Below the pieces are notes generated by a model. It was not told where the DNA came from. It worked only from the letters and a program-made list of their open reading frames with translations, and did no database searches. A stretch of 64,000 nucleotides of DNA from assembly GCA_964252035.1 (NCBI GenBank), contig OZ176213.1; one strand, 5' to 3'. Positions 12,601 to 35,818 of this stretch are shown here, piece after piece; position 1 is the stretch's first letter; every line of letters begins with the position of its first letter. Position numbers and translations under genes: made by a program. The DNA is from Podarcis erhardii (Eukaryota).

Positions 12601-15600
12601 CTTCCTCAGTGTGAAAGCGATGGATGGTCTCTACTCAACATTATCAGCCAGGAAGAGGCAAGATGTGTATGACTTCCAGAAGGCTTATTTAGCTTATCAG
12701 TTTGCTGATTCAGGTAAGGAGCCAAAGGGGCAGGTCTTAGGAATTTCACCCTGATACAGGAGCAGGGAATGGATAGAGCTGGCAGACCAAATCCTTATCT
12801 CCCCTGCCCCCTGTGGGCCAAGCTTGACAGGGGAGCGTGGTGGTTCACCTGCTCATCATTTGATGCCACAGGTGACCTGTTTTTGTCACCATAGCTTGAA
12901 GTTGTGTCACATGGGCCAAAGTGCTGTGCTGTTAATGCCGCAACAACCAGCTGATTGGCAGTACCTGCAAAGCCCTTTTGACAACCGGATGATATGTATG
13001 TCAAGTGTTGGGCAGGTGGTGGTGGGGTCTTGGCCAAAACAGTTTCACTGGCCAAATGGGAGGCCTGGTGGACCTAATTATTGAGCCTTCCCCCAACCTC
13101 AGCCGCTAGTTCAGTTGCTGAGTGTTTATGAACAGTTTATCTGCTCAGAAGTTTATCTCTTCGGTGCTTGGGGCAAACTGTTCTGTTGGCTGGAAGAAGG
13201 GCAGGGAAGGAGGAGGAGGGTGTAATAGACTTCCAACATTATTTCTGCACAAATTCGTCATTTGTAAGGAACCCAGCTGTGGATTTTAGTCCATCTTCGC
13301 TTGACACATTCTCTTGCCTCCACAGGGTCAGCGTGCGATGGTGGGACTACAGGAATCCGAGACTGGCTGACAAAGAATTTGGGGGAGTTTTGCACAGTGG
13401 CTAAGCTGAGTGAACTTCAAGCTTTTTACCCAGAACTTGATGGAGTAAGTTTTTCTCGGCACTGTGCTCCAGAGGGGGCTGCCCCACCTCATTCCTCTGC
13501 AGGGAACAGTAGCAGCCCTGTGCAACGATGAAAGTATCTTCATCCAGCCTAAAATCGACAAAAGGGAGCTGACATATCTTTAAGGGAAAGGATTGATGTT
13601 CTCTGTAGTCTCTTTATATTCCACTCTTTCTTCTCTTCTTGAGTTTTCAAGCTACTGCTTGCTTTAGAAAGTAAATACTTCAGAAATCAACCTGATTGGC
13701 ATCCAAATTGTCTTTCTAAGGCTGGTGTTTAGTTTAATCAGTAGCAATCTGGGGAGCAAATTTCTCCCGTAGTGGTTCCGTTTTCAATGCCTGAGTATCA
13801 TCATTAAGCTGAGATGCAGCAAAATGAAGCTGTGCATTTTCTTCTAAAGCAAACACAGATTTTTAACACAGATGGCGTAATGTTTTCAAGGACAGTACGG
13901 ACATGGAAAATCACCCATGAATTCTGTCAAAATTTAAGCAAGAAGGGGTTTTTTGGGTGGGTATCTTCCTTACATATTTTAAAAAGAACACTGTATTTAA
14001 CCATGTAACAACGGTTCTAAATCAAACATGATTTTTCTGTGTTTTGGAAATGGTTGCTGATATCCAGAGCATCGTCTTTCTACCCGCTCTTTATTCTGTG
14101 GTTGTGCTCATCTGCTCAATTAATAAAATAATAATAATGTTGAAAACAGCTGAATTGGTATGTTTCATGGTGGTGTTTTCTTTAAGAACACACACACATA
14201 CACACACACACATTAGTAATGTGGTCCTTTTAACCCCACACCCATGCCCCCGAAAGGTGGGATCAGACATGGGATGGAGTAGAAATTCAGTCCAATTCAC
14301 ATTTCACTTGCAGTTTCTGCAACAATATATTAACAGAAACCCAGTGGTATCCTTTGAACTTTGCACCGCTCCAGATTTTGCAATGCGGTGCTCCACCCAA
14401 GCAATATATACGAAAGATGGGGCAACGCAGGCCTAAAAATGCATACAGGAGTAAAGGATAGCATGCAAAAACGCATTAAGCTAGGGGGAATTGCTTTGCA
14501 CAAATGTGCCCATCAAGGAAAACTGCATAAAAAAACATGTATTTTAGGAGAAATATGCACTAAAATGTTTTTGAATTTTAATGAAGGCTTAACCAAAATT
14601 AAAACAAACAAACACAAAATTATTGGAAAAATGAGAAACAAGGAAGAACTGAAACTGATTAGGCCAGCCCTACATGGGATACTGAGCGTTTCGACCAACT
14701 GATTGCTACTGATTGAACTAAGCTTAAAAGCATCTTTTGCCAACCTGTGGCCCTCCAGACTCTTTTGGACTACAACCCCCATCAGCCACATTCTTGGGGG
14801 GGGGAGTGGGGTAGGCAGTATCTACAGCAGGAATGAATAAATGGATTCATACTCCATAAATAGGTATGTAACAGTGAAGTATCTTTATTGGTTGCATTCA
14901 ATTAAATTTTACTCAGATTAGAGCCATTGGAATTAATGGATTCAGGCTCATCATCTCCATTACTTTCAATTGGTCTATTCTGACAGTAGATGCAGCCCCA
15001 CGTCTCTTAGGCTGCAACCTGGGAGTATGCTCCACTTAGCTCAGTGGGGTTTATTTCTGAGTAGACCTGCACAGAATTTGCTCTGTTAACAATATTAGGC
15101 TGCAATCCAAACATGGAGGTGTGGCAAAGTTCATTTATAGCTATGCTAGTTGTGACCAATAGCACCTAGGGAAGCCACGCCTAATTGCAGACCTGGGGCG
15201 GTGGCCAAGGCTGGATGTGCAGACAGAATAGTGACCTGTTCTGGTCACATCCACACCACACTTTTAAAGCACTCTTACGCCACTTTAACAGTCATGGCTT
15301 CCTGCAAAGAATCCTGGGAACTATAGTTTTCCCAAGGTGCTGAGAATTGTATGTCTATGAGGTACAACTCTCAAATCCAATCACAGCTCAGTTGGAGGAA
15401 AAGTAGGCAAGCTTTTGCTGCTTTCTTAGTCTCAATTGCCCATCTGTAAAATGGGACCAAGGCAGGAACCTCACAGGGTTAAGGGCAAAAGGAAGCAAGG
15501 GTTTTCATATAAAAACAACAGAGGTCCAGGCCAATAATAATAATAATTAATAATAAATTTATTTTTACCCTGCCAATCTGGCTGAGTTTCCCCAGCCACT

Positions 15601-18600
15601 CTGGGTGGCTCCCAACAGAATTAAAAGCACAATAAAATACCAAACATTAAAAACTTCCCTAAACAGGGCTGCCTTCAGATGTCTTCTAAAAGTCAGATAG
15701 TTGTTTCTTTCCTTGACATCTGATGGGAGGGCGTTGCACAGGGCGGGCGCCACTACCAAGAAGGCCCTCTGCCTGGTTCCCTGTAGCTTCACTTCTCGCA
15801 CGGAGGGAACTGCCAGAAGGCCCTCAGAGCTGGATGATGGGGAGTGGAGACGCTCCTTCTGGTATACTGGGCCGAGGCTGTTTAGGGCTTTAAAGGTCAG
15901 CACCAACACTTTGAATTATGCTCGGAAACATACTGACCTATCCGATACAGTGCTTTGAAGCTGGCACCAGACTCTGGTAGCATGAATTTTTAAACTGTCT
16001 ATAAAGGCTCTCACTGATGGGATACCAAAAATGGTTAGGGTGCTTCCAGATTTTCCTTGACATCTGATCGTTTAGTCCAAGACCCCCTGATTTTTAGAAA
16101 GTGGGGTGTTTTTACAGAACGGGGCCACTAGCTAAGAATCTGAACTTTTGTACACACTCAAGGGCAGCCTGATTACTAGGAAAAGGTCTAGTTTGTGTGG
16201 GTGACAGGAGTGAGCCAGCAATAAATCACACCGAGCAAGTTGGAGTAATTCTTTATTAGCAAAAACAGCATCTGCACAGCATTGTCAGGCCTAACGAGCA
16301 CAGCAGCTCATCTCCAGTAGGTCCCATGCTCCCATGAAGCAGTCACTGAGTCTGAAGGTCCCCACCTCCCCACAGCTGCTTAAGTCCCTTCCTCACCAGG
16401 GTTTTCCCCAAGCAATTGGAGATTGCACCTGCATGAAGCTAACTTCTCACCGTCCTTTTAATGCTTCTTCTTGTTCTGGGAGACCAAGAGGCAGGGGAGC
16501 TCATTGCAGCAGGAGGGGGAGACATACATGCCAGACTCTTCTCTGCCTCTTGGCCTCCCTCCTCTCCAGCCTCCACTTCTGCCTCCAGTTCTGGACTCCT
16601 CTGCCACAGACTTACTAAACCCTGTTACCTCTTCAGCTTTCAACAGCTCCTCCTTCCAGTCTTCTTCTTCTCCTCCCTGTGTCCACTTATCGTCGTCTCA
16701 CTAGCAATCCCTGGGTTCTGAGCCTCAGCTGGTTCCTTCCACCATTCTTCTGTGTCCAACCAGTCCATGACATCAGGCAGTAGGGAGAGGAGCACACCTC
16801 AGTTGCAGAGCACCTGCTTTGCATGCCAAAGGGCCCAGGTTGGATCACCAGCATCTCCAGGTAGGGCTGAGAAAGAGTCCTATTTAAAATTCTGAGAACC
16901 TCTGCCAGTCATTGTTGATTGTAGTGAACCAGATGGACCATTGCCCTGAGTTAATATAAGGCAGCTCTGTATGTAACCTGGAATTTGATACAGACACCCC
17001 CCATTACTTATATAATAATTATTTTAAATGGCCCATCCCCATCTCCCATGCCTGGTGTGTTCCAGGGCACCATCACCACTGGGAATAGTGGAAGCCTTCA
17101 GGTAAGACAAAGCAAAGCCTGGCACAAAACTTGATAAATGGCATTTGACCGGGTGAATAGACACAAGTGAAAACGGATTGCATTGGAAATGATGAAGACT
17201 AGGGGTGCACATCCACTCTGGATAAAGTCCAGATATGAAGCTGAAGTATTAGAGGTAGCCAGACCTCCTCTGGAAATGAAATGGGTCTTGCCAGAAGTGG
17301 TCCCAAGCAAACCAGTCTAGTTCCAAAGCTTCCAGTCTTCCTACAGTAATTCCTTATAATTAATCCGCAGATGGAGAACCCTTCTGCCCTCAGACCAGCC
17401 CAAGCAGCAGACCTAACTGTCATTGCCCAGATGTTGCACAACTCCACCCTGGCCAGCCTGGCTCTTGGGGTCGTGAAGAACTTTAAAAACTATGGCTCGC
17501 TTCATGAATATTTGTCCAGGCTCAAAGGCCCTCCCTGCAAGGTAAGGTTGGGGGGCGGGCGGTTCCCATGCCATTTTGTGATGTGCTAAAATCTATTTCC
17601 TTGGCCACAGTCTCACTTGATCTATGTGTTCCAACTTTCTGATACCTCTCCTTGATAAGACAGTGTTCCATTTTGTGCCTGTTTTGGATGACTTCTACAC
17701 AATTTTCTGGTTCATGCCAATGAAGAGCATCTCATAGCCAAACACAGGACAGATCCACACTGTGCATTAAAACATATTTAATGCATATTTAAAGCATGTG
17801 TCTTTCCCCAAAGAATCCTGGGAGTTGTAGTTGGTAGGGTGCTGGGAATTGTAGCTCTATGAGGTGGGACTACAGTTCCCAGGATTCTTGGCGGGGGGGG
17901 GGGGGAGTGAGGTACTTTAGATGCAGCCACAGGAGGGGAGAGTGCTCATGTGCTCAGATCCTGTTACGGGTTTCCAACGGGCATCTGGTTTGTCACTGTG
18001 AGAACAGCATGCTAGACTAGATGGGCCATTGGCCTGATCCAGTAAGCTGTTCTTGTTTTCTTCAATGTATGTCCAATGTGTGTCCAATGTATGGTGTGGA
18101 TCTGCCGATAGGCTCTATTTTGTGCTTTCCATCAATGTGTAATCTAGTGGAACGGGCTTGTGAAAGCCAGCTCCCTCCCTGCATTCATATCTCTTGATAT
18201 GTTTTGTGAACAAGTCTGTTGAGCCTAAGCATACCACTGGCACACCCTACAGAAATCCTGAAAGCTCTTTCTTTCTCTGGACTGTTGTGAAGCCCACTTC
18301 TTTCATCCCTGTGTCTTCCACGCAGAGCTACAAGCCCACAGAAATCTTGTCTATGTGTCAAGGACCTTCTCCACTGGCTGCTCTCACCCCTGAAAGCCAG
18401 CAAGAGCTTTTGGACAATGTATTTCTCTTCCTCAAGAAAGGAGGAGGTTCAATGGACTCCTCTCAGTGGAACGAAGTCTACCACCTTTTGCTCTCCAACT
18501 TCCTACCGACTCTGGGGACATCCCGCCACCCCCAATCATCCTCCAAGGCAGCATGTGAACACTTCCATTCCACGTAAGTCAGAGGTGCCGTAATATGGGT

Positions 18601-18917
18601 GGGGTGGGGGGGGGGGAAGTGTACAAAAAAAGAAAGAAAAGGCATCTATTACTGAAAATAACGTTCAGAAATGCAGAAGAAAGGGTGGCTTGTAAAAATG
18701 TGCATATTGGGTAAGACTGAGTACAAAAACTAGGAGACATATGCACTAAAACACTTAACAATTTTCATGAGGACTTTTAAAAACAAATAAACAAATATTG
18801 CAGACTGATGGGGTGGAGCTTAAGACTAGGAAAAAAATGAGAAACTGAGAGAAACCAACATTGACAGATTCACCCACCCCTATATCATATAACCTTGAAT
18901 TTTGTTGAAAATGATAG

Positions 18918-18971
<54 letters not shown>

Positions 18972-21900
18972 AAGAGGAAATAGATAAATTTCTGAACAGA
19001 GCCTCCTAGAATCTTATGTTGCTCAAAAGGTCCCACACTAAAAAAATACCTCACCTGCTGCTTCAAAACTTACAGTATTTTTTAATCGCAGAATGAAGGA
19101 GATTGTTGCACTTCACCCCGGCCTTACTAAATGGCAGGAAGAACTTGCAGAGGTCAAAAGCCTTTGCCTCCTGGGTGATCAACAACCCAAACCCACAGGT
19201 AACCTTTCATTACTAAGGTGGAGGGTCTTCCTTCAGTCTGAGGGTGGCATTCCCTTCTTAGAGAGCCAGTGTGGTGTAGTGGTTAAGAGCGGTAGACTCG
19301 TAATCTGGGGAACCGGGTTCGATTCCCCGCTCCTCCACATGCAGCTGCTGGGTGACCTTGGGCGAGTCACACTTCTTTGAAGTCTCTCAGCCCCACTCAC
19401 CTCACAGAGTGTTTTTTGGTGGGGGAGGAAGGGAAAGGAGAATGTTAGCCACTTTGAGACTCCTTCGAGTGGTGATAAAGCANNNNNNNNNNNNNNNNNN
19501 NNNNNNNNNNNNNNNNNNNNNNNNNNNNNNNNNNNNNNNNNNNNNNNNNNNNNNNNNNNNNNNNNNNNNNNNNNNNNNNNNNNNNNNNNNNNNNNNNNNN
19601 NNNNNNNNNNNNNNNNNGAAGAAAAGTGAGCAGAACGTAGGAAGTCAGATTGTTGGTCCTCTTAGCTGACATGTTCCCAAACTGATACTTCCTCTCTTTC
19701 CATTTGCAGCAGCAACACAAATCCCTGAAAGAACGGCAAATCACCCCCCTGGAGGTGCCAAAACTCAGAACGTTGCAAATGTCACAGGTGATGCCCCTGG
19801 GCAATCTGTGTCTCGCAGTCCTGGAGATGCCACCACTCGTCCAACCGAGGTCCCTGCAGCTGCCACAGGGGCCATCCAGGGAGAGGCTGGAGGCATCTCT
19901 GGCAGTGCCCGAACTCTCCACCCAGGAGGCAACACAGGACGGACAACTGGATGGTCTGCATCTTGCACTTCAAGGCAGACCACCACTCCCACCCTTGGAA
20001 GTGCCATAGGCAATACCCCTGACATCACAAGAGGCACCACAAGCAGCATCCCTGCTGCTCCTACAACACACAGCCCTGAGAGTGCCACGGGCCACATCCC
20101 TGGAAATTCTACAGGCATCATCCCTGGTGGTGGTACAACTCACATCCCTGGAGGCACAACCAGCAACGTTACTAGAGGAGCCTCAACTCAAGTCCCTGGT
20201 GGAGCAACAAGCAACATCCCTGGTGGTTCTGCAACCAACATCCATGGTGGAGCAACAAGGAAAATCCCTGATGCTGCTGCAACTCACATCTCTGTAGGAG
20301 CAACAGGCAACACCATTGGTGGAGGTGCTGCAATTGACCTCCCTGGTGGAGCAACAAGCAACATCCCTGGTGGTTCTGCAACTCACATCCCGGGAGCTAC
20401 TGAAACTTCAGTTCATGGAAGCTCAAACAGCAACATTCCTAGAAGAACTACAGCTCCCATTCCTGGAAGGGATACAGCATACAGTCAAAGTATCCCGGGT
20501 GCTGGAGCAAGCTCTGTCACTGGGGGCAATACAACTCACATCCCTGGAAATGTTTCTGGAGGTGCCCCTGCATATGCATGGACTCACCCAGTCCTATTTT
20601 TCACCTGCCTTCTCCTCCCTTGCTTTATTGTAACCATTTCCCCATAGTGCACCTCTGTTTCACAACCCACCTGCAAATTTGCCTAAATAAGAGACACTCT
20701 TTGGAATCAGACTACAGTGTTGTGTATCAGTGTCTTTCCAGATAAGTGGTAGCACTTTTATAGCATCCTGCTACTCTAGAATCTTGAATTTGTTGTGTTT
20801 GATTACACAGAATATATTTATCATGCAATAAATCATCCGTCCACCCAATGGTGCACATCAAAGTATTCTGGTATCCTTCTAGCTTCACATTACCGTGAAA
20901 TTTGTACAAAATGGGATTGCCATATTTCAAACAGTGAAGATCTGGACGGAAAAGTTGTTGAGCTTTTTTTTTGGGGGGGGGCAAAATCTTTTGGAAAATC
21001 GGCAAAAAATGACACTGCCAACATGGGCTGCCATATATCTGGATTTTCCCGGACATTTCCACGATTTTTGTCCAGACACTGGTGCCAACTGCAATATTCC
21101 GTGCATGTCCGGGAAATTCTGGCCTTATGGCAACCCCAAATAAAGATGTAGGTTGTTGTGTGAAAAGAGGACCATGTGTGGCTTCTGTAGAAAGCATTTC
21201 CCCTTCTTTGCTTCATAAATCTTATTTTCCTTAGTAGCAGTAGAAAGAAAGGTTTGGTGGAAGCTCTATCATCTAATATTTAATATTTATTGCTGAACAT
21301 TCCTTATTTCAGAACATCTCAGTTTGGAAAAGCAGCTGGACATTGCTGGGTGCCTCCCCCACCATTCTGTTCCTCTCCCCTGACCCCTAACAGAGTTTAG
21401 CCCACATAGCGAGTTAAAGTTAGGCAGTTCAGCGGGACTTATTAGGCATAGTGACACACAGTTATACCAAGTCAGATCATTGGTCCATCTAACTCAGTAT
21501 TGTCTCCAATGACTGGCAGAGGCTCTCCAGGGTTTCAGACAGGGAGTCTCTCCCCACCCTACCTGGATGTGAAGCAGGGGCAGTGATGGGTGTGGCCTAA
21601 AGAAAGCGGGTGTGTCTGGGAAGAGGGTGTGGTGTAGGAGAGTCCTGAGGGCCACATAAAGAGGTTTGGAGGGCCAGATGTTTACAATAATACATTAGAG
21701 GAGGGAGGGAGGAGAGTTATGGACCTCTAGAAGGAAAAAGGCACCCAGATCAAAAGGAAGGGCCAAAGAAAGGCTGGGTTTCAGGGAAGGCGGATAAAGA
21801 AGTGATGCAAGGTAGGTATGAATAATAGAATGAAGTTCTTAAGAAGAAGAAAAGTGAGCAGAACATAGGAACACAGGAAGCAGCCTCGCACCAAGTTGGA

Positions 21901-24900
21901 TCGTTGGTCCACTTGGCTCAGAAGTTTCCAAACTGATTATTTTCTCTCTTTTTTTCATGTTCATTTTCAGCAACACAAATCCCTGAACGAGCCCCAGATG
22001 ACATCCCCGGAGGCTCCCCAGGCGATATCCTTGGAGCGGCTGAAACTCAAAATGTTACAAGTGTTCTAGCCAATTCCCCTGAAACAACCAAAGGGGGCAC
22101 TTTTGAAGAAGCTGCAATTCATGGTCCTGGAGATGCCACCACTGTTGCAACTGATGCCTCTGCAGCTGCCACAGGGGACACGCAGAGGGCTGTGACCTTC
22201 ATCCCTGGCAGGCAAACAGGAGGCACCACTGGCAGTGCGGCAACTCTCCACCCTGCAGGAAGCACAGGAGGGATGCCAGGAGGGACTGCATCCTACATCT
22301 TGAGACAGACCACTACTCTCATCCTTGGAAGTGGAGGCATCTCAATAAACTTCCTTAATGGTGCTGCAACTCACATTCCTGGAGCAGCAACTGGCGACAT
22401 TCTTGGGGGTGCTGTAATTAATGTCCCAGGCAATATTGTTGGTGGCACTGCAACTCACATTCCTGTTGGGGTAACAGGCAACATCTATGGTGGTACTGTA
22501 ACTGACATTGCTGGAGGTGCCACGGGCAGGATCCTTGGTGATACAGAGCCTCCCATCCCTGGAGGTGCAACAGGCTACATTCCAGGTAGTGCTACAAGGC
22601 ACATCCCTGGAGAAACAGGAGGCAACCTCACTGGTGGTTTTGCAACTGACAACCCAGGTAGGGCAACAGGCAACATAACTTCAGGTTCTGCAACTAACAT
22701 CCCTGGCGGAGCAACAGGCAACATCTTTGATGGTTCTGTAACTCAGATCCCTGGTGACACAACAAACAACATCATTGGTGGTTCTGCAACTCACATCTCT
22801 GTAGGCACAGGAGTCAATGCAGCTGGTGGTTCTGCAACTGATATCACAGGTGATGTAACAGGCAACATTCCTGGTGGTCCTACAACGCACATTCCTGGTG
22901 AAACAGGAGGCAACTTGGCTGGTGGTTCTGAAACTGGCATCCTTGTTGGTGCAACAAGCAATTTCCCTGGAGGTTCTGTAACTCACAACTCTGTAGCCAC
23001 TGCAGACAACACTGATGGTGGTTCTGCAACTCAGATCACCCATGGTGCAACAGGCAACGTTCCTGATGGTGCTGTAACTGACAAACCTGGAGGTGTAACA
23101 CGCGGCATAACTGGTGGTTTCCCTACTCAAATCTCTGTAGGCACAACTGGCAACATTCCTGGTGGTTTGACAGTATATATCCCTGGCCAAACAGGGGGCA
23201 ATCTCTATAGTGGCTCTGCAACTGGCATCACTGGTGCAACAACAGGCAACATCTCTGGTGGTTCTTCAATTGACACCCCTGATGGTGCAACAGGCTATAT
23301 CTCAAATGCTGCTGTAACTAACATTCCTGGTGGTACAATAAACAACATCCTTGGTTCTGCAACTCATGTATCTATAGACACAAGGAGCAACACTGCTGGT
23401 GGTTCTGCAACTGACATCCCTGGTGAAATGGGAGAAAACACTGCTGGTCATTCTGCAACTGGCATCCCTGGTGGCGCAATAGATGTGTCTGAAGGTTCTG
23501 CAACTCACAACTCTGTGAGCACAGCAGGCAACATTGATGGTGGTTCTGCAAATGACATTGCTAGCACAGCAACGGGCAACATTCCTGATGGTGCTGCAAC
23601 AGACATCTTTGGTGGAGGAACAGGGAACAGCTCTGATGGTTCTACAACTGACATCCTTGGAGAGGCAACAGGCAGCATTGCTGGTGGTTCTAAAACTCAC
23701 ATCTCTGTAGGCACAACAAGAAGTAACACTGCTGGTGGTTCTGAAGCTGACACTGCTGGTGCAGCAACAGACAACATTTCTGACATCCTTCATGGCATCA
23801 CAGGCAACATACTTGGTAGTGCTGCAACTCACATCTCTGTAGGCACAAGAGACAACATTGCTGGCAGGTTTGCAACTAACATGCAAGGTGCAGCAACAGG
23901 CAACATCCCTGAAGTTGCTACAGCTGACATTGCTGGTGCAGCAACAGGCAACATTCCTAATGGTCCTACAACACGTGTCCCTGGTGAAACAGGAGACAAC
24001 CTCACTGGTGGTTCTGTAACTGACATTGCTGGTGCAGCAACAGACAACATCCCTGCAACTAACATCCTTGGTGGTTCTGCAACTCACATCTCTGTAGGTA
24101 CAACAGGCAACAGTGCTGATGGTTCTGCAGCTGATATTATTAATGGTGCAACAAGAAACATTCCTGGTGGATTCACAACTGGCATCCTTGGAGAGGCAAC
24201 AGGCAGCAGCACTGATGGTTCTTTAACTCCCGTCTCTATAGGCACAAGAAGCAATGCTGCTGGTGGTTCAACAGAAATTGTCTCTGGGGGTTCAGCAGCT
24301 TACAACTCTGTAGGCACAGGGGGTAACATTGATGGTGGTTCTGCAACTGACATCACTGTTGGTGCTACAGGTCACATCCCTGACGGTGCTGCAACAGACA
24401 CTGGAATTGCAGCAGCAGGCAACATACCACATGCTGCTCCAACCTTCATCCCAGGTGGCACAACAAACAATATCCTTGATAGTTCTGCAAGTGGCATTAC
24501 TGTTGGTGCAACAGGCAACATTCCTGGTGGTTCTGCAACTGACATTCTTACAGAGGGAACAGAGAGCATCTCTGGTGGTTCTGAAACTTATGTCTCTGTA
24601 GGCACAACAACAAGGAGCAATACTGTTGGTGGTTCTGCAATCGGCACTGCTGGTGGAGCAACAGGCAACATCACTGGTGGTTCTGCAACCAACATAACTG
24701 GTGGTGCCACAAGCAACACCCCTGGTAGTTCTGCAACTCAAATTCCTCATCACACAACAGGCACCCTCAGTGGTGGTGATGCAACTCAGATCCCTGTTAC
24801 AGCAACGGGCAACATGTGTGGTGCTGCTGCATCTGACATCCCTAGTAGCACTACAGGCAACATCCCCAATGGCTCTGCAATTGACCTCCCTGGTGGTGCA

Positions 24901-25365
24901 ACTCCAGACATCAATGGTGGGGACGTCACCCAAATTCCTGGTAGTGCAACAGAGGATGTCTCTGATGGTGATTTAACTCATATTCCCGGGGATGCAGAAA
25001 CTCACATTCTTGGTAGTGCAACAGGCAAAATTCCTCCTGTCTCTGAATTTGATATTCCTGGTGGTGCAACAGGTAGTCTCACAGGTGGTTCTGCATCTCA
25101 CACCCCAAGAGCAGCAACAGGCTACATTCCTGCTGGTTCTGCAAGTGACATCCCCGGTGCCACAACAGGCAACGCCAATGGTGGTTCTGCAATTCCCATT
25201 CCTACTGGTGCAACAGATAACCACACTGGCGGTGCTGCAACTCACATCCTTGGAAACACCACAGGGGACATCTATGGAGGTGCCCCTTCATATGCATGGA
25301 CCCATCCAATCCTGTTTTCCACCTCCCTTGTCCTCCCTTACTTTCTTACAACTGTTTTCCTATAA
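733..25365 (+). CDS. 5'-truncated multi-exon gene: tandem-module cell-surface protein with GPI-like tail (mesothelin/MSLNL-like candidate)
   Basis: 19 shared exons with canonical AG/GT ends and continuous frame: 733-900,1221-1432,2571-2674,3564-3682,4282-4449,4750-4946,6402-6505,6796-6914,7411-7569,8609-8817,9404-9507,9652-9770,10159-10332,11276-11478,12610-12713,13326-13444,17371-17541,18326-18573,19092-19198. These are followed by terminal exon 19710-20647 or 21971-25365, giving 1281 or 2100 aa within the window. The exon structure is well supported. The family assignment is inference from adjacency to CIAO3 (MSLN/MSLNL neighbour CIAO3 in human), leucine-rich helical modules and the GPI-like C-terminus. 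Confidence 0.8.
4282..6914 (+). CDS. Module 2 (exons A-B-C-D, 196 aa)
   Basis: Exons of 168/197/104/119 nt with the same phases. FDVRGNLTATQLA... / ...IPCSTFKA / MAGLDGSF...VYNFAKGYL / GDPCTENTRGSLGWLTANLGSF... Confidence 0.9.
5268..6120. mobile_element. Unclassified CpG-rich insertion with inverted ends, interrupting an L2-like 3' end
   Basis: cttttgcgtggac (5267-5279) is inverted at 6079-6091. The flanks 5150-5267 and 6121-6200 read as a continuous L2-type tail. Confidence 0.5.
7411..9770 (+). CDS. Module 3 (exons A-B-C-D, 197 aa)
   Basis: Exons of 159/209/104/119 nt with the same phases. MDAVARLTPSQLAEYT... / ...MSCDSLAA / VEGLNDH... / GSACTQGASTDQEWLSKFFGPF... Confidence 0.9.
8930..9265 (-). 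mobile_element. Two tandem copies of an abundant tRNA-derived SINE (Squam-type)
   Basis: Recurrent ...actgactggcag...ccctacctggagat...gggaccttctgcat... sequence. Related copies or fragments near 3865, 16785(+), 21470, 25675, 31315, 32320, 42575(+), 42750(+), 51700 and 54335. Confidence 0.7.
10159..13444 (+). CDS. Module 4 (exons A-B-C-D, 200 aa)
   Basis: Exons of 174/203/104/119 nt with the same phases. VDSLDLFSASALAQLS... / ...MPCPYYQT / VKAMDGLY...VYDFQKAYL / GSACDGGTTGIRDWLTKNLGEF... Confidence 0.9.
15548..15940 (-). mobile_element. L2-clade LINE 3' fragment
   Basis: The minus ORF LTFKALNSLGPVY...RAFLVVAPALCNALP...FRRHLKAALF is typical of an L2 ORF2 C-terminus, with an (AAT)n-like tail. 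Confidence 0.8.
16194..16772 (-). mobile_element. Solo-LTR-like sequence
   Basis: Minus strand starts TGTCATGGACTGG and ends ...CACACA, with AATAAA ~55 nt from the 3' end. No TSD seen. Confidence 0.35.
17371..19198 (+). CDS. Degenerate module 5 (exons A-B-C only)
   Basis: Exons 17371-17541 (171 nt), 18326-18573 (248 nt) and 19092-19198 (107 nt) have good splice sites and the A/B/C phase pattern. MENPSALRPAQAADLT resembles the A exons, and the B exon keeps its terminal Cys (ACEHFHS). Confidence 0.75.
18921..18966. repeat. (AG)n microsatellite
   Basis: ~23 perfect units. Confidence 0.95.
19261..19482 (+). mobile_element. tRNA-derived SINE truncated by the gap
   Basis: A-box tggtgtagtgg and B-box gggttcgattccc, followed by a SINE body (gtgaccttgggcgagtcac...). 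Confidence 0.75.
19483..19617. other. Assembly gap (135 N)
   Basis: Run of N. Confidence 1.
19710..20647 (+). CDS. Terminal exon 1: short G/T/A/S/P repeat stalk (~311 aa) plus GPI-anchor-like signal
   Basis: Pyrimidine tract and CAG acceptor at 19709. Phase 1 matches the donor at 19198. Open to TAG at 20647, ending GGAPAYAWTHPVLFFTCLLLPCFIVTISP*. Confidence 0.85.
20827..20832 (+). terminator. AATAAA downstream of the short terminal exon (second copy at 21139-21144)
   Basis: Hexamer 180 nt after the stop codon. Confidence 0.45.
20913..21136. mobile_element. MITE with GGGTTGCCATA-type TIRs downstream of the short terminal exon
   Basis: gggattgccata (20913-20924) and tatggcaaccc (21126-21136). 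Confidence 0.55.
21971..25365 (+). CDS. Terminal exon 2: long G/T/A/S repeat stalk (~1130 aa) plus GPI-anchor-like signal
   Basis: Acceptor ttttcag at 21970, phase 1, in frame with the 22192-25365 ORF. Uninterrupted 3395 nt, ending GGAPSYAWTHPILFSTSLVLPYFLTTVFL*. Confidence 0.85.
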
Positions 25366-25557
25366 TCCAACCTTGCTTTCCACAATGTTTTGCAAAATAT
25401 TTAATATTTCTTAGTAAACATTCCTTATTTCTGTACATCTGAGTTTGGAAAAGTAGCTGGATGTTTCTTGGTGCCTCACCAACCATTGTGTTTTTCCACC
25501 CTCCAAACTCCGCCTCCACCCCTTAGAGTTCAGTCCACTGGCAAACTTTGTGCAGGC

Positions 25558-25563
25558 AATAAA
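25558..25563 (+). terminator. AATAAA downstream of the long terminal exon
   Basis: Hexamer ~190 nt after the stop codon. Confidence 0.5.
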
Positions 25564-28389
25564 AAGCTGGGTCCTTTGTGCTTTGGAGATCAATACATGG
25601 TGATTTAATGTGGATATCCAATGGCCAATTGCAGAACCTTATTAGGCATGTAGACACAATTGATGTGAAACATAAGAAGCTGCCTTATACTGAGTCGGAG
25701 CATTGGTGAGCTAGCTTAGTACTGCCAGCACTGATTGGCAGCAGCTCTCCAGAGCTTCAGGCAGGGAGTATTTCCCACTCCTCCCAGGAAATACCAGAGA
25801 TTGAACTTGAGACCTTCTGCGTGTAAAGTGAGCCATGCTCCTTCCACAAATTCCTTCCACAATTAGGTGGTTATCTAATGAAGGATTTTCAGCACTCTCA
25901 CTTGCTGGTGTCTTGGGGAATGCACTCACCTTTCATTCTCTAAATGATTCTTAGCTTGGATCCTTGGTATACTTGTGTGTGAATTTATCATACCCTCCAA
26001 CATTTCTCTGATGAAAATAGGAACATCCTATTCCATCATCATCATCATGATAAAATGAAATTTATTTATTTTTTAATTTATACCCTACCCCAGCTACTCT
26101 GGGAGGCTTCCAAAATATATAAAATCATAATAAAACATTAAACATTACAAAAAAATTCCCTGTACAAGGCTGCTTTCAGGGGACTCGTGGGTTGCATAAC
26201 TCCATACCCTCCAACATTCATCCAATGAAAATAGGGATGTCCTCAGAAAAAGTGGGACATTCTAGGATCAGATCAGAAACCAGGATGGCTTCTGTAATCC
26301 GGGACTGTCTCTGGAAAATAGGGACACTTGGAGGGTCTGATATATTCAATGTTCATGAATATTCAGAGGTAGTGTGCTAAGCAGGTTAATATCCTCACTC
26401 CAACCTCTGTTTCCCTTTCCCCCAGAGTCAGGGCTCAGCCACACACCTTTTGCCTTGCACTTCCTAGGCTCAGGCCTGCACTTTCTCAGTCCGTGCCCCA
26501 GAGCTCCCCCCGCCCCACCACTTCACCCAGGAAAACCCACTCCTTAGCACTGAATCGGAACAAATGACAATTTGGTTTTTCCCTGGATTTCCATTTCCTC
26601 CAATTCAGCGGTAAAGAGCATGTTTTCATGGAGAAATCAGTGAGAGGGAAAGACAAGTGCTCAGACGTGGACCTAGAAATCCCAGACTGCACCTAGCAAT
26701 ATGGAGCAAAGGAAAGTGTGGATGAGTCCTCAAAACTCCACAAGGAAAATAACATCTTACGCTGTGTGACACTTTTTAAAGGAAATAAAGCTTTTAACTT
26801 TTATTTTTGGTCTGGTTATTTGTTTATTCCCTTGCAAAGGAAGACCTCAATTTATGACCTGGTTGTTTATCCTGCTATTCCCATTGCAAAGAAAATACTT
26901 GGGGCTGGCTGTGTGTCTTGAGCCTTATCACTTTGACACACACAGCAAAGCTGTTGTTTAAAATTCTCTATCTAGTTCCGCCCCAAAACTGGATCATAGT
27001 ATGAGCAGCCAGCACAGCCAATGGCCAGGGATGATGGGAGTTGTAGTCCAGCAACTTCTGGAGGGTCACAGATGATCCCCAACCTTGCTTTAGGTACTAA
27101 CAGAAACCATTTGTGTTATGCTCAGGGAAAAGCACTTTGAATATGCTCAGAAACATACTCGAGGGACAAGCCAGAGGTTTTGAAAACCCAATGTGGCAGC
27201 TGTACATCATGTTCCTATTAGGTAAAGGTAAAGGTACTCCTATTAGCCGCAGCCTATTTAATAAAAAGGGTATTTTAGCTGGATTTGGCATCCTCCAGTG
27301 TAATTTTATTGCATTTTCTGCACTCTCCTTAAGCTTAGAGCTGCTATTAGAGCTGCCCAAACACTGAGATTCTTTTTAGGCCCAAACATTCACTTTCCAA
27401 GATTCCAAGTCCTGTAGGCTTTGAGTGGGTATTATTATTATTTCAGTTTATGAGTTATGACTTGAAGCAGTTTGTCCACATGCAAGTATCGGTCCCCAAG
27501 GGGCTCATAATCTAAGCCAGGAGTGAAGGTTCTCAAGGCCTGTTTGGAGCACCAGCTCTGAGATGCTCAGATGTCTCTGCAATAACTTGAGTGAGGATCC
27601 CAGAGCTGGTTCGCAGGTAGCCCCACCCAGACAACAACAACAACAAACAACAACAACAACAACAAGGCATAGTTTATGAGCTTCTTATGCACTGGGTAAC
27701 CGAAGCAGACATAACACAGTTTTTGATACATATGATTACAGATTTTTTTAATAAAAAGCTCAGAGTTTTATCCCAAAAGTCAATGTAGGAGCCATGAAAC
27801 GAGGAGGAAAGGATAGGATGTATGTTAGTTATTTGTTTGTGACATCCAGAGCTTTATGCATCAAGTCAGTGGGGTCCATCTAGTCTGGCATCCACAATGG
27901 CTATCCAGATGCCCAGAGGGGAATTTGCAAGCAGGACCTGAGCTCAAGAGCACTCTCCCCTCCTCTGGTTTCCAGCAACCACCATCCAGAACTCAGAAGG
28001 ATTATTATTTCTTTTATATTCCACCTTTCCTCCAAGGAGCTCAGGATGGCATCCTATGAAGTTCTCCTCCTTATTTTATCCTCAGCACAACCCTGTGAGG
28101 TAGGTTAGGCTGAGATAGTGATTGACTGGACCAAGGTAGGGATTTGAACCCTGGCCGTCCAGGTCCTTCACTCTAACCTCTGCACGACAGGCTCATCCCC
28201 TCATTACAGATTCTTCTTCGCGCCTAATTCGGTTTAAGCTTTCAAATGGATTATTTCACTGGCTTTTGCCCCGCACGTGGACGGGGCTGCCATCGAGAAC
28301 CTGAAGTGATGGTTACTTTGAGCACTCTACCTCTAACTCTTTGGAAATTCTCTTTTCTTCCTTTATAGACTTAGTGTAGATTCACATAT

Positions 28390-28580
28390 TTGGGAAAGAT
28401 GGAGGGCACAAGGAGAAGGGGACGACAGAGGACGAGATGGTTGGGCAGTGTTCTCGAAGCTACCAGCATGAGTCTGACCAAACTGCGGGAGGCAGTGGAA
28501 GACAGGAGTGCCTGGCATGCTCTGGTCCATGGGGTCACGAAGAGTCGGACACGACTAAACGACTAAACAACAACAACAAC
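28390..28580 (+). mobile_element. RTE-BovB LINE 3' end
   Basis: gggaaagatggagggc...gagatggttgg...ccatggggtcacgaagagtcggacacgactaaacgactaa followed by an (AAC)n tail, the characteristic BovB terminus. Confidence 0.85.
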
Positions 28581-28619
28581 AGATTGACATATAGGGCTCA
28601 ACGCCCGGGTTTCTTTCCA

Positions 28620-29210
28620 CCTCCCTCCCCGAGTGAATAAGTATGAAACGGCCATAGACATCAATAGGCAGGTTGCTGAAAACCACGTCTAGGTTAAATC
28701 AGTTGGTTTCTCCGTTTATTTCTGCGGGCAAAAAACCTAGCCAAGCTAACATCGGGAGCCCTCATTAAGGAGGTGAGGGGGCTACTCTGCATAATTTATC
28801 TCCGTGTTCCTCTTTCGCCTTCGTCGTTTTGCGACAGTGTGGCGGAAATCGTTTATCAGGCAGTGTTGTACGAGCATATACTTCCTCGTCGGAGCTTTAC
28901 GGCAGTGTGGCGGGGAAGGGAGATGCGAAGATGGCTACGGCTGTGTCGCCCTTCAGCGGAGTCCTGCAGTTGACGGACCTGGACGACTATATCGGGCCCT
29001 CGCAAGTGAGTGGGGCGGGGGAGGAGGAAGAGAGAAAGTGGAGGCAGGAGAACGAGAAGGATACAGGCATTTGGGGCCGGTCCCGTGTCGTATTCTTTGC
29101 AAACCTTACAACAACCATGTGAGGTAGGCCAGCAGTAGCAGCACACGCATGCTCGCCCATTGCTGAGACTCAGAGTGAGCGGCCCCAATATGCGGGGCCG
29201 GGGTGGTGTC
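28620..29210 (+). promoter_or_regulatory. CpG-rich promoter/first-exon region of CIAO3
   Basis: Local CpG enrichment around the ATG at 28931, against a CpG-poor background. Confidence 0.7.
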
Positions 29211-32200
29211 ATGATTAGAGGGTCAGGTTAGGGAAGGTAAAGGGACCCCTGACCATTAGACCCAGTGGCAAACGACTCTGGGGTTGTGGCGCTCATCTCA
29301 CTTTATTAGCCGAGGGAGCCGGCGTACAGCTTCCGGGTCATGTGGCCAGCATGACTAAGCCGCTTCTGGCGAACCAGAGGAGTGCACAGAAACGCCATTT
29401 ACCTTCCCGCTGGAGCGGTACCTATTTATCTACTTGCACTTTGACGTGCTTTCGAACTGCTAGGTGGGCAGGAGCAGGGACCGAGCAATGGGAGCGCACC
29501 CTGTTGCGGGGATTCGAACTGCCGACCTTCTGATCGGCAAGCCCTAGCCTCTGTGGTTTAACCCACAGCTCCACCCGCGTCCCTGGGTTCAAATCCCTTC
29601 TCAGGCATTGGAGACTCATTGGGTGGCCTTGGTCTGGTCAGGGTTGTCATGGGAAGGAAGGAAGGAATCAAAGGTTCTGGCTTCAGCAAATTGAAGACGG
29701 GACTGGTTTTAAATGTAATGAAAAACGTAAAGTGTCCAAAGTAAAGTGCATCCATTCTTTCTCTTGGCAAACCTCACAGCGATCCTGTAAGGGGTAAGTT
29801 GTTTTATCCTAACCATGGTGTGTGTGTGTGTGTGATGGGGTGCGGTGGGGAATAAAGCTGGCATTACGCTGTGGGTTAAACCACAGAGCCTAGGACTTGC
29901 TGATCAGAGGGTCGGCAGTTCGAATCCCCGCAACGGGGTGAGCTCCCGTTGCTCGGTCCCTGCTCCTGCCAACCCAGCAGTCCGAAAGCACGTCAAAGTG
30001 CAAGTAGATAAATAGGTACCGCTCGGGCAGGAAGGTAAACGGCGTTTCCGTGCGCTGCTCTGGTTCGCCAGAAGTGGCTTAGTCATGCTGGCCACATGAC
30101 CCGGAAGCTGCATGCCGGCTCCCTCGGCCAATAAGGTGAGATGAGCGCCGCAACCCCAGAATTGGCCACGACTGGACCTAATGGTCAGGGGTCCCTTTAC
30201 CTTTACCTATCAACCAGATTATCAATGCCTGAAGCAGGAATTTCTGAACTGTCCAGTGGGAGTCTAGGAGGAAACACTGCTTCTTCTTCCTGAAGTATGG
30301 ATTGTGGGGTGTGTGTTTTGGTGTTTCATTTTCAGTAGTTCTCTTTCCTTTCAGGATTGCATAAAACCCATCAAAGTTGAGAAGAAGCTTGGGAAAGCAG
30401 CAGCAAAGATCCGCATTGAAGATGATGGGACTTACATTCAAGTTGACAAGGTAAAGTTTCCCCTCCTCAGTTTGATCACATCATAAGATGGGCTGGGGAA
30501 GCTTTTTTTAAGCTGTGTGTTTTTGCATTCCACCATCAAGCTTCTGGGGGCCACGTGGCAGTGGTGGGCAGGGCCAGAGGTGAAAGCAGGTGATGCCATT
30601 GCTGTGCCTCTTATACAGTAAGCTAAATCCCTGTCATAAGAGATACAAAATAGGTTTGGGGATCAGTGGTTACAGCTCTGCAGCCCCAACTACGAATTCA
30701 GAAGCCTCTTGGAAAGGAAGTTAGTTGCAGAGTTTGTTAACAGCTCTCCAGAAAGGAGAACCTTTTCAGTTGTAGTCAAGAATATTGTCCTGGTTAATGG
30801 ATGCTCTCAGAAGAGCAATTACTCCCTTCTGCTCTTTGGACTGTGAATCTCTCATGTTTGGCCCTACAGTCTGGAGCCAAAACTTGTTACAGTCCTTGGA
30901 CCCCTCTGTGATGCTTTTATTTATAAAATCTCCAACATCATCGTCAGATGGTGGGGAGGTAACCCCTGAATGACTGCTAGTGAAAGCTGGAAGTACTTTT
31001 CACGAAGGCTTGGAAGCTGATCTCCATCCCCTCTGACCAACTCTCCCTTTCAGGATGGAGGGTCACAAAAGCTTGAGAAGGCCAAAATCACCCTAAATGA
31101 CTGCTTGGCATGTAGCGGCTGCATCACGTCTGCGGAGAGTGTCTTAATCACACAGCAGAGCCACGAGGAACTCCTCAGGGTCTTAAATACCAATAAAGTA
31201 AGTTGTTGATTCTGTCAGCATGTGAGTCATAGGGCCTGAGGACCTGGAAGATGAACTCTTTCTTGCCCACTTGTGCAGGAGAAGGGGTCTGATCTAGGGA
31301 CAGGAAGGTAGGAAGCTGCCTTATACAGAAAGCCAGACCATTGGTCCATCTACACTGACTGGCAGTGGCTCTCCAGTGTTTCCAGCAAGGGAATTTCTAA
31401 GCCTTACCTGGAGATGCTGCTTGGGACCTTCTGCATGCAAGGCAGTTGCTCTGCCCTTGAGTTACAGCCCTTTGCCACTGAGTAGGCTGGATTTTCTTCC
31501 ACTGCCAGGAGCAATGTTAGCAAGCTGTTTGCATTCTGGTTGGCTTCAGAGCAAATGATCTAGACCTGTTATAAAGCTGCTGGTAGGTTTGTGTTTGTCT
31601 TCCACTACTCATTGCATTAGGGACTAGATTCTCAACATATATATATTTTTAAAAAGAATCCAGCCATTTCATGCTAGCTACAGAAAGGCTCAGGGCACCT
31701 CAATATAGAAAAGGTAAATACTCCAGCAAATACTAATTTCATGTTGATGCTTGTTTGTTTTTTTAAGACGTCAGGTTCTGCTTCCCAGAAGCTGGTGGTG
31801 GTGTCCGTATCTCCCCAGTCCCGAGCTTCGCTGGCGGCAAAGTTTTCACTGACTCCTTTAGACACAGCCAAGAAACTGGTGTCTTTCTTTAAAAGTTTAG
31901 GTGAGCAGCAATGTCTCTTCTGAAGTATATAGCTTGATGATTTAGTAATTAAACACACTTGGGATCAAACGGATTCCTGTGTTCCTGAGCATCACATTTC
32001 TGCCACGAGGCTGGAAGGATAAAACTATTCAGGGGCTGCAGATCTTGCTGCCTTTTCACCCTTTTAACAAATAGCTTTTAAATGTCATTCTCATTTAGAT
32101 GTCTGTTTGAATGGACTGCCCATATTAATTAAGTTGGGACTTATTGTTAGCTGATGATGTTTCTTTCTTTCCCCTCTGTTACATTTACAAAAATATATTT

Positions 32201-35200: not shown

Positions 35201-35773
35201 GGAGTGCTACTGCTGCTGCTGCTTTGCTGCTGCCTGTCCCTTGCTCCAGCCTCCCTCACTGGCTAAAGAGCCAGCAGCCATTGCAAGCAGTCATGGAAGT
35301 TGCAAGAGAGCCATGACCTGGGAGGAAGCATTCATTTTCCAACCAGGCTGACTTTCCCACCAAAGTTGTACTGTTCGTCCATGTTCCGTTGCTGTCAGTT
35401 TCCACTCTGAGCAGTGCCTTGGGAGTGTGTCTGAAGAGACCATGTTTTGCAGTAGCAAATCTCTGGTTCCACCCTGACCCCTTTTAATTCTTCCCCAGAA
35501 ACAAGGACTTACAGGAAGTGACGCTGGAAAAGGATGGCAAAACCCTCTTGCATTTTGCCCTGGCATACGGATTTCGGAACATCCAGAACTTGGTGCAGAA
35601 ACTGAAACGGGGGAAGCTGCCGTATCACTACATCGAGGTGATGGCTTGTCCTTCAGGTGAGGCCACCTGCAGGTTGGAAACGGCAGGGGGGATAAGAAAA
35701 GGCTGCATATGTCGCTTGGAGCTCTCTGGCAGCATCCTAAGAATTCTCCCTTTCACTCTTACCAGTTAATACT

Positions 35774-35818
<45 letters not shown>

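Follow-up and report, generated by a model that had tools for sequence, protein, structure and literature searches.

The gene that adjoins CIAO3/NARFL in the window (the whole stretch of 64,000 nucleotides from Podarcis erhardii that was analyzed) ends in two homologous terminal exons, A and B, which stand in tandem behind one common donor, the arrangement of duplicated alternative last exons (Table 1). The duplication is old and covers no more than the terminal exon and the sequence directly beside it. In the best explanation, to which we give slightly better than an even chance, A serves as a 3'-terminal exon of the gene and B would be the alternative to it. The gene product would be a very large, putatively secreted alpha-solenoid protein made of repeated four-exon modules. 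Splicing of 19198 to 19710, which was observed, followed by cleavage after A gives a short-stalk protein. If the acceptor and poly(A) site of A were skipped and 19198 spliced to 21971, the same module array would be carried on a longer stalk.

Table 1. Features at the 3' end of the gene, in window positions
Feature	Positions	Strand	Basis
Constitutive exon third from the end, a type, in the last partial module cassette	17371-17541	+	tblastn, P. lilfordi P0052 residues 2447-2503
Second-from-last constitutive exon, b type	18323-18573	+	tblastn, P0052 residues 2503-2586
Exon c, 107 nt, phase-1 donor (CACAG/gtaacc), must join A or B	19092-19198	+	sequence
Assembly gap of 135 N between exons c and A	19483-19617		sole N run in the window
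Intron part of copy A with its acceptor (pyrimidine tract, ...ccatttgcag)	19618-19709	+	aligns with 21846-21970
Terminal exon A, short stalk, 312 codons, GPI-type tail	19710-20647	+	open frame, stop 20645-20647
Insertion of ~620 nt in the A 3' flank, not in copy B, repeated elsewhere in the genome	20650-21274		homology jump from 20646 to 21275
AATAAA, likely poly(A) signal, 177 nt past the A stop	20827-20832	+	sequence
3' flank block of copy A	21275-21371	+	homologous to 25396-25492
Intron part of copy B with its acceptor (long pyrimidine tract, ...tcattttcag)	21846-21970	+	alignment to copy A
Terminal exon B, 1131 codons, long stalk of 8/16-residue repeats, GPI-type tail	21971-25365	+	open frame, stop 25363-25365
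3' flank block of copy B	25396-25492	+	homology to the copy A block
AATAAA, likely poly(A) signal, 190 nt past the B stop	25558-25563	+	sequence

Structure and age of the duplication

The gene order is c-A-B-CIAO3. The window does not include the 5' end of the gene, and 1648 residues precede the first mapped exon of the window in the P. lilfordi model. Exon c translates to MKEIVALHPGLTKWQEELAEVKSLCLLGDQQPKPT, the same as in the P. raffonei model P0001, and ends in ...CCC ACA G/gt, a phase-1 donor. Both acceptors are intact and in the matching phase 1; the acceptor of A (AG at 19708-19709) does not differ between the window, P. raffonei, L. agilis, and Z. vivipara, and that of B (AG at 21969-21970) is kept in the four lacertid species. 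With the donor's G, exon A starts A-A-T-Q-I-P-E-R and exon B starts A-T-Q-I-P-E-R. The TQIPER start is common to the two copies, as is a GGAPxYAWTHP motif with an 18-residue hydrophobic end. A and B are each closed by a separate stop codon and poly(A) signal. In all four lacertids AATAAA follows the A stop at +177 to +193, and in three of the four (the window, L. agilis, and Z. vivipara) it follows the B stop at +190 to +195; P. raffonei has no canonical AATAAA hexamer at +190 to +195 past its B stop. The original prediction of two tandem homologous terminal exons was thus borne out by the phase-1 acceptors, the open frames, and the homologous starts and ends.

In BLASTN alignments the two copies were 76.5% identical over 98 nt of intron and exon start (19642-19732 versus 21893-21990), 64-75% in the body, 82% over 90 nt of the tail (20557-20646 versus 25275-25364), and 84.5% over 97 nt of the 3' block (21275-21371 versus 25396-25492). 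Duplicated flanks had been predicted as well, and both the upstream intron and the 3' block were confirmed, the block being slightly shorter than proposed. In the gapless loci of P. raffonei and L. agilis the homology begins ~110-130 nt 5' of each acceptor, and the pair of 3' blocks is also present. In the window the upstream edge of copy A is masked by the N gap, which borders a very high-copy repeat (depth, bins 19150-19549). The insertion in the A flank contains the poly(A) signal of A, and DNA-run depth reached 22,000-30,000 in bins 20750-21149 versus ~100 elsewhere; the spacing between A and B is equal in the other lacertids.

A search between and after the copies yielded no relics of upstream coding exons; therefore, only the terminal exon was duplicated. 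Divergence between A and B in the N-terminal part (dS ~0.55) compares with 0.05-0.10 between species, and the A-type and B-type sequences of the window species, P. raffonei, L. agilis, and Z. vivipara form separate orthologous groups. The three other lacertids have the tandem too. One stalk exon with ~110-130 nt of intron and at least ~130 nt of 3' flank would have been tandemly duplicated in a lacertid ancestor.

Transcripts, gene models, and selection on the frames

The RNA evidence is thin and comes from one informative run, X9, of unspecified tissue. Exons a, b, c, and A were expressed in X9 at a depth of ~3-7, with exon A itself at 2.7-7. One transcript contig covered 17428-17539 of the a exon, which is also part of P0001. 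Contig record 26 includes 18425-18573 of the b exon and then enters exon c and exon A: it aligned to 18425-18573 and 19707-19833, and the ~104-107 nt between these segments were assigned to exon c by depth arithmetic (record 26 has a depth of 6.46, and 58 nt of it account for the 1.87 in bin 18950-19149). A 405-nt contig (20353-20763) passes through the A stop into the 3' UTR. Depth was 0 past 21150 and also on the first 1.4 kb of B (21950-23349), where a minor isoform would escape detection at the depth of X9. The run X10 gave one 200-nt, unspliced-looking contig in B, which may be pre-mRNA or DNA, because X10 also contains unspliced and intronic pieces. No read or contig across the junction 19198 to 21971 was found in the RNA runs examined.

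The gene models gave a similar picture. The P. raffonei RefSeq gene LOC128401955 (P0001) has the same exon chain with A as its last exon, and the longest recorded product of this gene uses A, not B. B is overlapped by a called gene in L. agilis and included in models of P. lilfordi, yet none of the retrieved models joins the module exons straight to B without A, and the models of these two species are not good transcript evidence for B. Of the predicted choice between two last exons, the junction 19198 to 19710 was recovered, in the X9 contig and the RefSeq model, and the junction 19198 to 21971 was not.

The L. agilis called gene (1238 residues, L005 2548-9631) is separate from the module exons and starts just 5' of B, in a region that has an in-frame ATG and a conserved GTAGGT donor. 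B could accordingly be the principal coding exon of an independent transcription unit that is not joined to the module array and has its own short first exon ~165-240 nt upstream, with a phase-1 donor CAAG/GTAGGT at ~21812. At least one in-frame ATG precedes the GTAGGT donor in every species. However, the position of the ATG varies, the first being absent in the window and the second in P. raffonei, and the putative first-exon region diverges and takes indels that are not multiples of three, like neutral DNA. The putative 24-residue first exon of L. agilis, MQPEQKEGPKKGWVSGKVDKEVMQ, does not look like a signal peptide, which would leave the stalk and tail unable to enter the lumen of the ER. 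The acceptor phase and the TQIPER start of B are, moreover, the same as those of A. We consider a separate unit unlikely.

The zero coverage of B in X9 would also be expected if B were a silent relic, an untranslated pseudo-exon that stayed open because its 24-nt array changes by whole units. The largest indels in B (48 and 96 nt) are indeed whole repeat units (period 24/48 nt, corresponding to 8/16 residues), and dN/dS is near 1. Between species it was 0.66-0.91 for both exons and differed from 1 at p<0.05 in 1 of 12 pairs, uncorrected for multiple tests. What argues for selection is therefore the pattern of indels and the lack of any stop. In all four lacertids both frames are open, and B has 1250 codons in P. 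raffonei, 1259 in L. agilis, and 1154 in Z. vivipara, against 1131 in the window. Species pairs differ by 9-13 indels in B, all multiples of three and including small ones of 3, 6, 9, 12, 15, and 21 nt; no indel of 1-2 nt occurs in ~3.4 kb across the four species. Indels in A are likewise multiples of three, except for one 2-nt indel in the Zootoca tail. In flanking non-coding DNA of similar substitution divergence (4.2-4.9%), 16 of 22 indels would shift a frame (27% would not), and at the flank rate of ~4 per kb about 13 such indels would be expected in B for one species pair. No stop has arisen although the copies far predate the species splits (A-B dS ~0.55), and the acceptor and AATAAA of B are conserved. 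A silent relic is thus quite improbable. The indel pattern indicates that both copies are kept by selection as coding sequence, as had been predicted for both ORFs; with dN/dS at 0.66-0.91 it is the frame that is selected and the sequence hardly, so the constraint appears to lie on frame and composition.

The P. lilfordi models link the modules to B only via a truncated A, cut after ...PGNVSG, and a 23-residue mini-exon. They raise the possibility of serial use, in which an internal donor of A (GGAG/GTGCCC, ~20561) would remove the A tail and stop and join A to B, giving a composite stalk of ~1400 residues. These models are chimeric, however, and look like predictor bridges, because the CIAO3 5' UTR is read as protein in them too. 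The donor at ~20561 is weak, and the X9 contig 20353-20763 is unbroken through the donor site, the A tail, the stop, and the 3' UTR. The A tail is conserved in three of four species, and selection on it would be unexpected if it were spliced out. We regard use in series as very unlikely. An assembly artefact, whether a haplotig or a contig wrongly scaffolded after the N gap, would fit the start of copy A directly behind the sole gap of the window, but this idea was refuted by collinear independent assemblies and is virtually excluded, because the copies are just 64-84% identical and the same c-A-B-CIAO3 order is gapless in three other lacertids (P. raffonei, L. agilis, and Z. vivipara); contigs of a DNA-like run also span both copies and the DNA between them at single-copy depth.

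For the alternative use of A and B, splicing of exon c to B is inferred because the B frame has long been preserved, its acceptor and poly(A) signal are conserved, and snakes use a single 1131-residue stalk exon in their orthologue of the gene. Each copy has kept a phase-1 acceptor, a Gly/Thr/Ala-rich stalk of 8/16-residue repeats, its own stop, and its own AATAAA, and the two would presumably be used in a mutually exclusive manner.

Comparison with other reptiles and known systems

In the Pantherophis guttatus "mucin-4-like" protein XP_034276598.2 (P0006), the same module exons are joined to one stalk exon of 1131 residues, and the junction from exon c to the stalk is the same as in the lizard gene. 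Rich in Thr, Gly, Asn, and Ile, the snake stalk repeats in a pattern of ...IP.G...T... and has a hydrophobic end. No second stalk exon was found in the 81-kb snake locus. Models of Naja and Ophiophagus resemble the Pantherophis arrangement, and the gecko Sphaerodactylus has a single short stalk of ~80 residues. Among the squamates compared, two stalk exons occur in lacertids only.

Tandem exon duplication was reportedly described by Kondrashov and Koonin in 2001 and by Letunic and colleagues in 2002 as a source of mutually exclusive homologous exons. Classical cases involve internal exons of equal length that swap a structured segment. The lizard gene resembles them in that a single exon and its splice site were copied locally, in the same phase, and both copies were long conserved. 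In contrast to the classical exons, the lizard exons stand at the end of the gene, are of unequal length (3.6-fold), and have their own stop and poly(A) site each. Mutually exclusive splice events from tandem exon duplication are described as uncommon but functionally important (PMC8373072). Mutually exclusive use is a common fate of tandemly duplicated exons, and exons 4A and 4B of KRAS are homologous tandem last coding exons after a common exon, each with its own membrane-targeting signal, although 4A may derive from NRAS by exon shuffling and not by local duplication (PMC9882654). The lizard gene shares with KRAS the tandem homologous last exons that encode distinct C-terminal regions, each with a membrane-anchoring signal. 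Both junctions are documented for KRAS, whereas only the A junction was seen in the lizard gene. The KRAS exons are short and encode lipidation motifs of a cytosolic protein, whereas the lizard exons are 0.9 and 3.4 kb long, consist of repeats, and encode GPI-type signals of a putatively secreted protein.

Family relations, stalks, and proposed membrane anchoring

The gene had been assigned to the mesothelin family, which Pfam did not confirm: PF06060 (Mesothelin) matched neither single window exons nor the six tetrapod proteins P0001, P0006, P0008, P0033, P0035, and P0037. The fish homologue P0039 does match (E 1.1e-75, residues 1681-2244), with the module array aligning to its residues 139-1563, outside the Mesothelin domain. 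The module array was modeled as an all-helical solenoid (mean pLDDT 83). In AlphaFold-DB Swiss-Prot, stereocilin and otoancorin took ranks 1, 2, 3, 5, and 9, all as borderline matches (E 1e-3 to 4e-3, TM under 0.25), and searches of PDB structures returned only generic HEAT/ARM/TOG solenoids and no mesothelin. Membership in the mesothelin family is therefore weakly supported, by a faint likeness of the predicted fold to stereocilin and otoancorin together with a fish homologue that carries the Mesothelin domain. Mammalian mesothelin is not known to have a long repeat stalk; human MSLNL and MSLN lie near CIAO3/NARFL at 16p13.3. The mesothelin, stereocilin, and otoancorin family consists of alpha-superhelical, GPI-linked surface proteins (PMC2628672). 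The lizard protein would have in common with these a C-terminal GPI-type signal and, if its predicted helical solenoid is of their type, the fold.

The stalks contain 24-26% Thr plus Ser, 16-20% Gly, 12% Ala, and 6-10% Pro in a regular 8/16-residue repeat, PGG.AT.I. They are stalk-like and probably O-glycosylated, with a composition that does not quite match that of a classical PTS mucin. Exon A ends in ...NVSGGAPAYAWTHP followed by VLFFTCLLLPCFIVTISP (mean Kyte-Doolittle 2.26) and exon B in ...IYGGAPSYAWTHP followed by ILFSTSLVLPYFLTTVFL (1.87), with no charged residue in either tail. In each, a GGA small-residue site would be followed by an 8-residue spacer and an 18-residue uncharged hydrophobic end. 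Judged by inspection, both copies end in a GPI-type signal, in line with the separate signals expected for A and B. The B stalk would be ~820 residues longer and more acidic than the A stalk. GPI anchoring and an effect of stalk length on function may be supposed from these features; if so, a stalk of ~310 or ~1130 residues would set the height of the module array above the membrane.

Structure of the duplicated terminal exons and RNA evidence on their use

The original prediction described two tandem homologous terminal exons with phase-1 acceptors, a short stalk exon (A) and a long one (B), and the window sequence and the A-B alignment proved it correct in essentially every detail. The upstream exon c ends in CACAG/gtaacc, leaving one base of the next codon over and thus giving a phase-1 donor. 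A and B share an (A)TQIPER start and further motifs across the first ~110 residues. After this N-terminal part both consist of Gly/Thr/Ala/Ile-rich repeats with a period of 24/48 nt (8/16 residues), and both close with GGAPxYAWTHP, an 18-residue uncharged hydrophobic stretch and the stop.

Terminal exons of the module gene and segments of homology between copies A and B (window coordinates)
Feature	Coordinates	Strand	Description
Exon c	19092-19198	+	reads MKEIVALHPGLTKWQEELAEVKSLCLLGDQQPKPT
Exon A	19710-20647	+	acceptor ...ccatttgcag; 312 codons, phase 1, open to stop
Exon B	21971-25365	+	acceptor ...tcattttcag; 1131 codons, phase 1, open to stop
Upstream intron and exon start	19642-19732 vs 21893-21990		A-B DNA identity 76.5% over 98 nt
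Exon body	many overlapping repeat matches		A-B DNA identity 64-75%
Tail	20557-20646 vs 25275-25364		A-B DNA identity 82% over 90 nt
3' flank block	21275-21371 vs 25396-25492		A-B DNA identity 84.5% over 97 nt

The best-supported reading, which we consider somewhat probable, is that A and B are alternative last exons born of tandem duplication of a terminal exon. The two copies arose from a terminal stalk exon that was duplicated in tandem. Splicing from c to A (c>A), the step seen in RNA, would set the module array on a short stalk, and we infer that splicing from c to B (c>B) would set the same array on a long one, the choice being presumably mutually exclusive. The nearest formal analogue of the exon pair is KRAS 4A/4B, with two last exons that carry different membrane-targeting signals (PMC9882654).

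RNA-run depth and contigs were examined over window 17350-23349. The first run search gave only DNA-like runs; of two small RNA runs, X9 and X10, the informative one was X9, a single run from a related species ~3-4% diverged. A 380-nt X9 contig lay on 18425-18573 and 19707-19833, and its intervening 104-107 nt were exon c: the depth in bin 18950-19149, 1.87, is what 58 nt would give at the contig depth of 6.46. Other X9 contigs covered exon a and the whole of exon A, and one (20353-20763) ran unbroken through the stop of A into the 3' UTR. The c>A junction was demonstrated in RNA. Over the initial 1.4 kb of B (21950-23349) X9 depth was zero, which at a depth of 3-7 in one run is weak evidence of absence. 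X10 gave one 200-nt contig within B (depth 2.8), which proves nothing because this run also contains unspliced and intronic pieces, e.g. 19626-19764. The predicted choice between two last exons was thus borne out for c>A; for c>B, no junction was seen in the X9 or X10 contigs over the region examined.

The RefSeq annotation of Podarcis raffonei uses A, and B is absent from the longest product recorded there. In the Lacerta agilis stretch examined, RefSeq has no gene over c and A and places a separate 1238-residue gene over B (L. agilis locus L005, 2548-9631; CM020428.1:29,813,316-29,820,399), where an in-frame ATG lies ~165-240 nt 5' of the B acceptor together with a phase-1 donor, CAAG/GTAGGT. 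This call would fit B as a separate transcription unit, but the position of the ATG is not conserved and the encoded 24-residue peptide is without signal-peptide character; we regard a separate unit as unlikely. A homologue search with the exon B sequence returned no match, probably through swamping by low-complexity word matches, since the 1238-residue product falls within the searched length range.

Constraint on the reading frames

dN/dS lay at 0.66-0.85 in A and at 0.73-0.91 in B, with p<0.05 in 1 of 12 pairs; substitutions tell little about the coding status of A and B, and it is the indels that decide it. When the window is compared with P. raffonei, B differs by 10 indels (3, 3, 3, 3, 6, 9, 15, 48, 96 and 309 nt) and A by 4, each a multiple of three in length. 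In the non-coding flanks (3.9 kb), compared at a similar substitution divergence (4.2-4.9%), 16 of the 22 indels were not multiples of three (~4 per kb). If B were a silent relic, ~13 frame-breaking indels would be expected in it for a single species pair, but none was found in any of the 6 pairs (9-13 indels per pair), and we consider this reading quite unlikely. Gain or loss of whole repeat units cannot account for the small in-frame indels of B. Together with the missing frame-breaking indels, these show that B, like A, has been under selection to remain translatable in every sampled lineage, in agreement with the claim of selection on both open frames.

Gene models, age and extent of the duplication

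Four P. lilfordi models (P0045, P0047, P0048 and P0052; CAI5792374-77) of 4031-4262 residues chain the modules, a tailless A, a 23-residue mini-exon, a tailless B, and CIAO3 with its translated 5' UTR. Taken literally they would have A and B used serially, which we consider very unlikely; the mini-exon, the tailless A and B and the translated CIAO3 5' UTR mark them as predictor chimeras, and they were rejected as transcript evidence. The lizard gene models over B give a hint of its transcription in some samples, in a manner that the models do not give. Close to the end of B, at the counterpart of window 25207-25230, the residues ...PTGATGNHTG are shared by P. raffonei, P. lilfordi and L. agilis. 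In the P. raffonei locus (L001) these codons make a potential internal donor, ACAG/GTAAC, from which the P. lilfordi models appear to splice towards CIAO3; the window has GAT (Asp) at this site, hence no GT. CIAO3/NARFL (iron-hydrogenase-like) exons lie directly 3' of exon B at 28856-36113 (+), followed in other lacertids by a HAGH-like (Lactamase_B) gene on the minus strand.

A search with exon A led to the 461-residue P. raffonei RefSeq protein LOC128401955 (P0001). Over window 733-19198 (L001 1-5545), P. raffonei RefSeq splits the module gene into a 2042-residue model and P0001. The former ends at L001 5545 (~window 13530), at a stop that arises when a 'd' exon is read through its own donor at ~13444, and the first residue of P0001 is a Met inside exon a. 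The exon order in the window, four a-b-c-d cassettes and then a last a-b-c with the stalk exon in the 'd' position, suggests that the two models are one gene.

The P. raffonei locus is collinear with window 8284-30525 at ~93-95% identity and holds both A and B, and upstream of CIAO3 the order c-A-B-CIAO3 is gapless in L. agilis and Z. vivipara (L006). In the four lacertid species A has 285-320 codons and B 1131-1259, all open, and the acceptors and tails of both are kept with the sole exception of the Zootoca A tail. There (L006 ~1200-1264) a 2-nt indel, the only out-of-frame indel found in A or B, turns the last residues into VLFFTCFFSSLALL, giving a shorter end that is still hydrophobic. The A-type sequences of the four species make up one orthologous group and the B-type sequences another, without signs of recent conversion. 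In the N-terminal part dS between A and B is ~0.55, compared with 0.05-0.10 between species, which makes the duplication several times as old as these lacertid genera. With independent collinear loci and so old a divergence, the tandem is real, and a haplotig or scaffolding artefact can be dismissed. The remaining probability falls to arrangements other than those considered here.

The duplication takes in upstream intron and a 3' block, as had been predicted. In two other species, whose loci have no gap, A/B homology begins ~110-130 nt 5' of each acceptor; the sole N gap of the window (19483-19617) masks the upstream edge of copy A. Between its stop and the 3' block, copy A holds a ~620-nt insert, a dispersed repeat as judged by depth in a DNA run. 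No relics of upstream coding exons were found between or after the copies, where a search gave only SINE-like matches. The duplicated intron segments 5' of both acceptors (19618-19700 and 21846-21960) resemble the 5' portion of a SINE-like dispersed element that has further copies at 21444-21577 and 25696-25827, and some of the acceptor region may derive from a transposon. Extreme high-copy repeats occur at 19150-19549 and 17950-18149 (depth up to millions in the DNA run, high in the RNA runs), and the N gap lies at the edge of one of them.

Stalk exons in other squamates and the module family

The corn snake 'mucin-4-like' protein P0006 (1475 residues) has the same module exons joined to one stalk exon of 1131 residues, whose end is hydrophobic; no second stalk exon was found in its 81-kb locus, and Naja and Ophiophagus models resemble this arrangement. 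A long stalk on the same module protein in snakes indicates that this form is normal in squamates and lends plausibility to c>B in lacertids. In the gecko Sphaerodactylus a single stalk of ~80 residues was found, with no second stalk exon in the locus. Two stalk-like pieces in Sceloporus undulatus (L003 17340-17700 and 19200-19618), the first with a stop, were rejected as a second stalk exon, as they appear to be one exon interrupted by a ~1.5 kb transposon insertion; the RefSeq protein P0005 reads the last exon in another frame. Among the loci compared (lacertids, snake, gecko and Sceloporus), the search for both exons was thus positive in the four lacertids only.

The gene had been placed in the mesothelin family. 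An exhaustive profile search with P0001 yielded 28 proteins, including uncharacterised squamate proteins and amphibian multi-module giants (amphibian a-b-c homologues are among P0002-P0004, P0007 and P0009-P0011). The a-b-c giants comprise 4419 residues in Bombina, 4555 in axolotl and 7139, with 15 module matches, in one further entry. These proteins appear to form a vertebrate family of helical-solenoid arrays that is as yet unstudied. For the P. lilfordi orthologue, AlphaFold modelling of 573 residues gave an all-helical solenoid (pLDDT 83); the best Swiss-Prot matches of this model were stereocilin and otoancorin, at E of only ~1e-3, and PDB searches with it gave generic HEAT/ARM/TOG solenoids. 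A fold has been predicted for the mesothelin family (PMC2628672). A sequence search with P0008 against PDB chains gave no match. Pfam Mesothelin matched none of ten single exons and none of the six tetrapod family proteins scanned. The fish homologue P0039 has a module array at residues 139-1563 and then a bona fide Pfam Mesothelin domain (1681-2244), an arrangement that may reflect a single protein or neighbouring genes fused together. Mesothelin-family assignment is a reasonable lead, short of established membership.

The main point of interest is a 3.4-kb repeat exon whose frame is intact across genera without detected expression, in an unstudied family. The locus also draws attention to a vertebrate gene family that lacks annotation and whose members, in amphibians and reptiles, are helical-solenoid module arrays of up to ~7000 residues; present annotation pipelines leave the gene split, truncated or fused with CIAO3. 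If B is not used with the module array, the locus would represent an ordinary exon duplication, its conserved open frame unexplained. Should both exons be used, they would provide a clean natural case, conserved across lacertid genera, of isoforms of a GPI-type surface protein that differ only in the length and charge of the membrane-proximal stalk. Both the GPI anchoring of the short or long form and a functional effect of stalk length are presumed, and whether stalk height matters would become testable through two natural isoforms. Tentatively, lacertids may for tens of millions of years have kept a regulated choice between duplicated last exons, displaying one giant stereocilin/mesothelin-like solenoid array on a ~310-residue Pro-rich or a ~1130-residue acidic stalk, each with its own GPI signal. 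If so, a surface protein from a vertebrate family not otherwise studied would carry a genetically hard-wired switch of stalk length.
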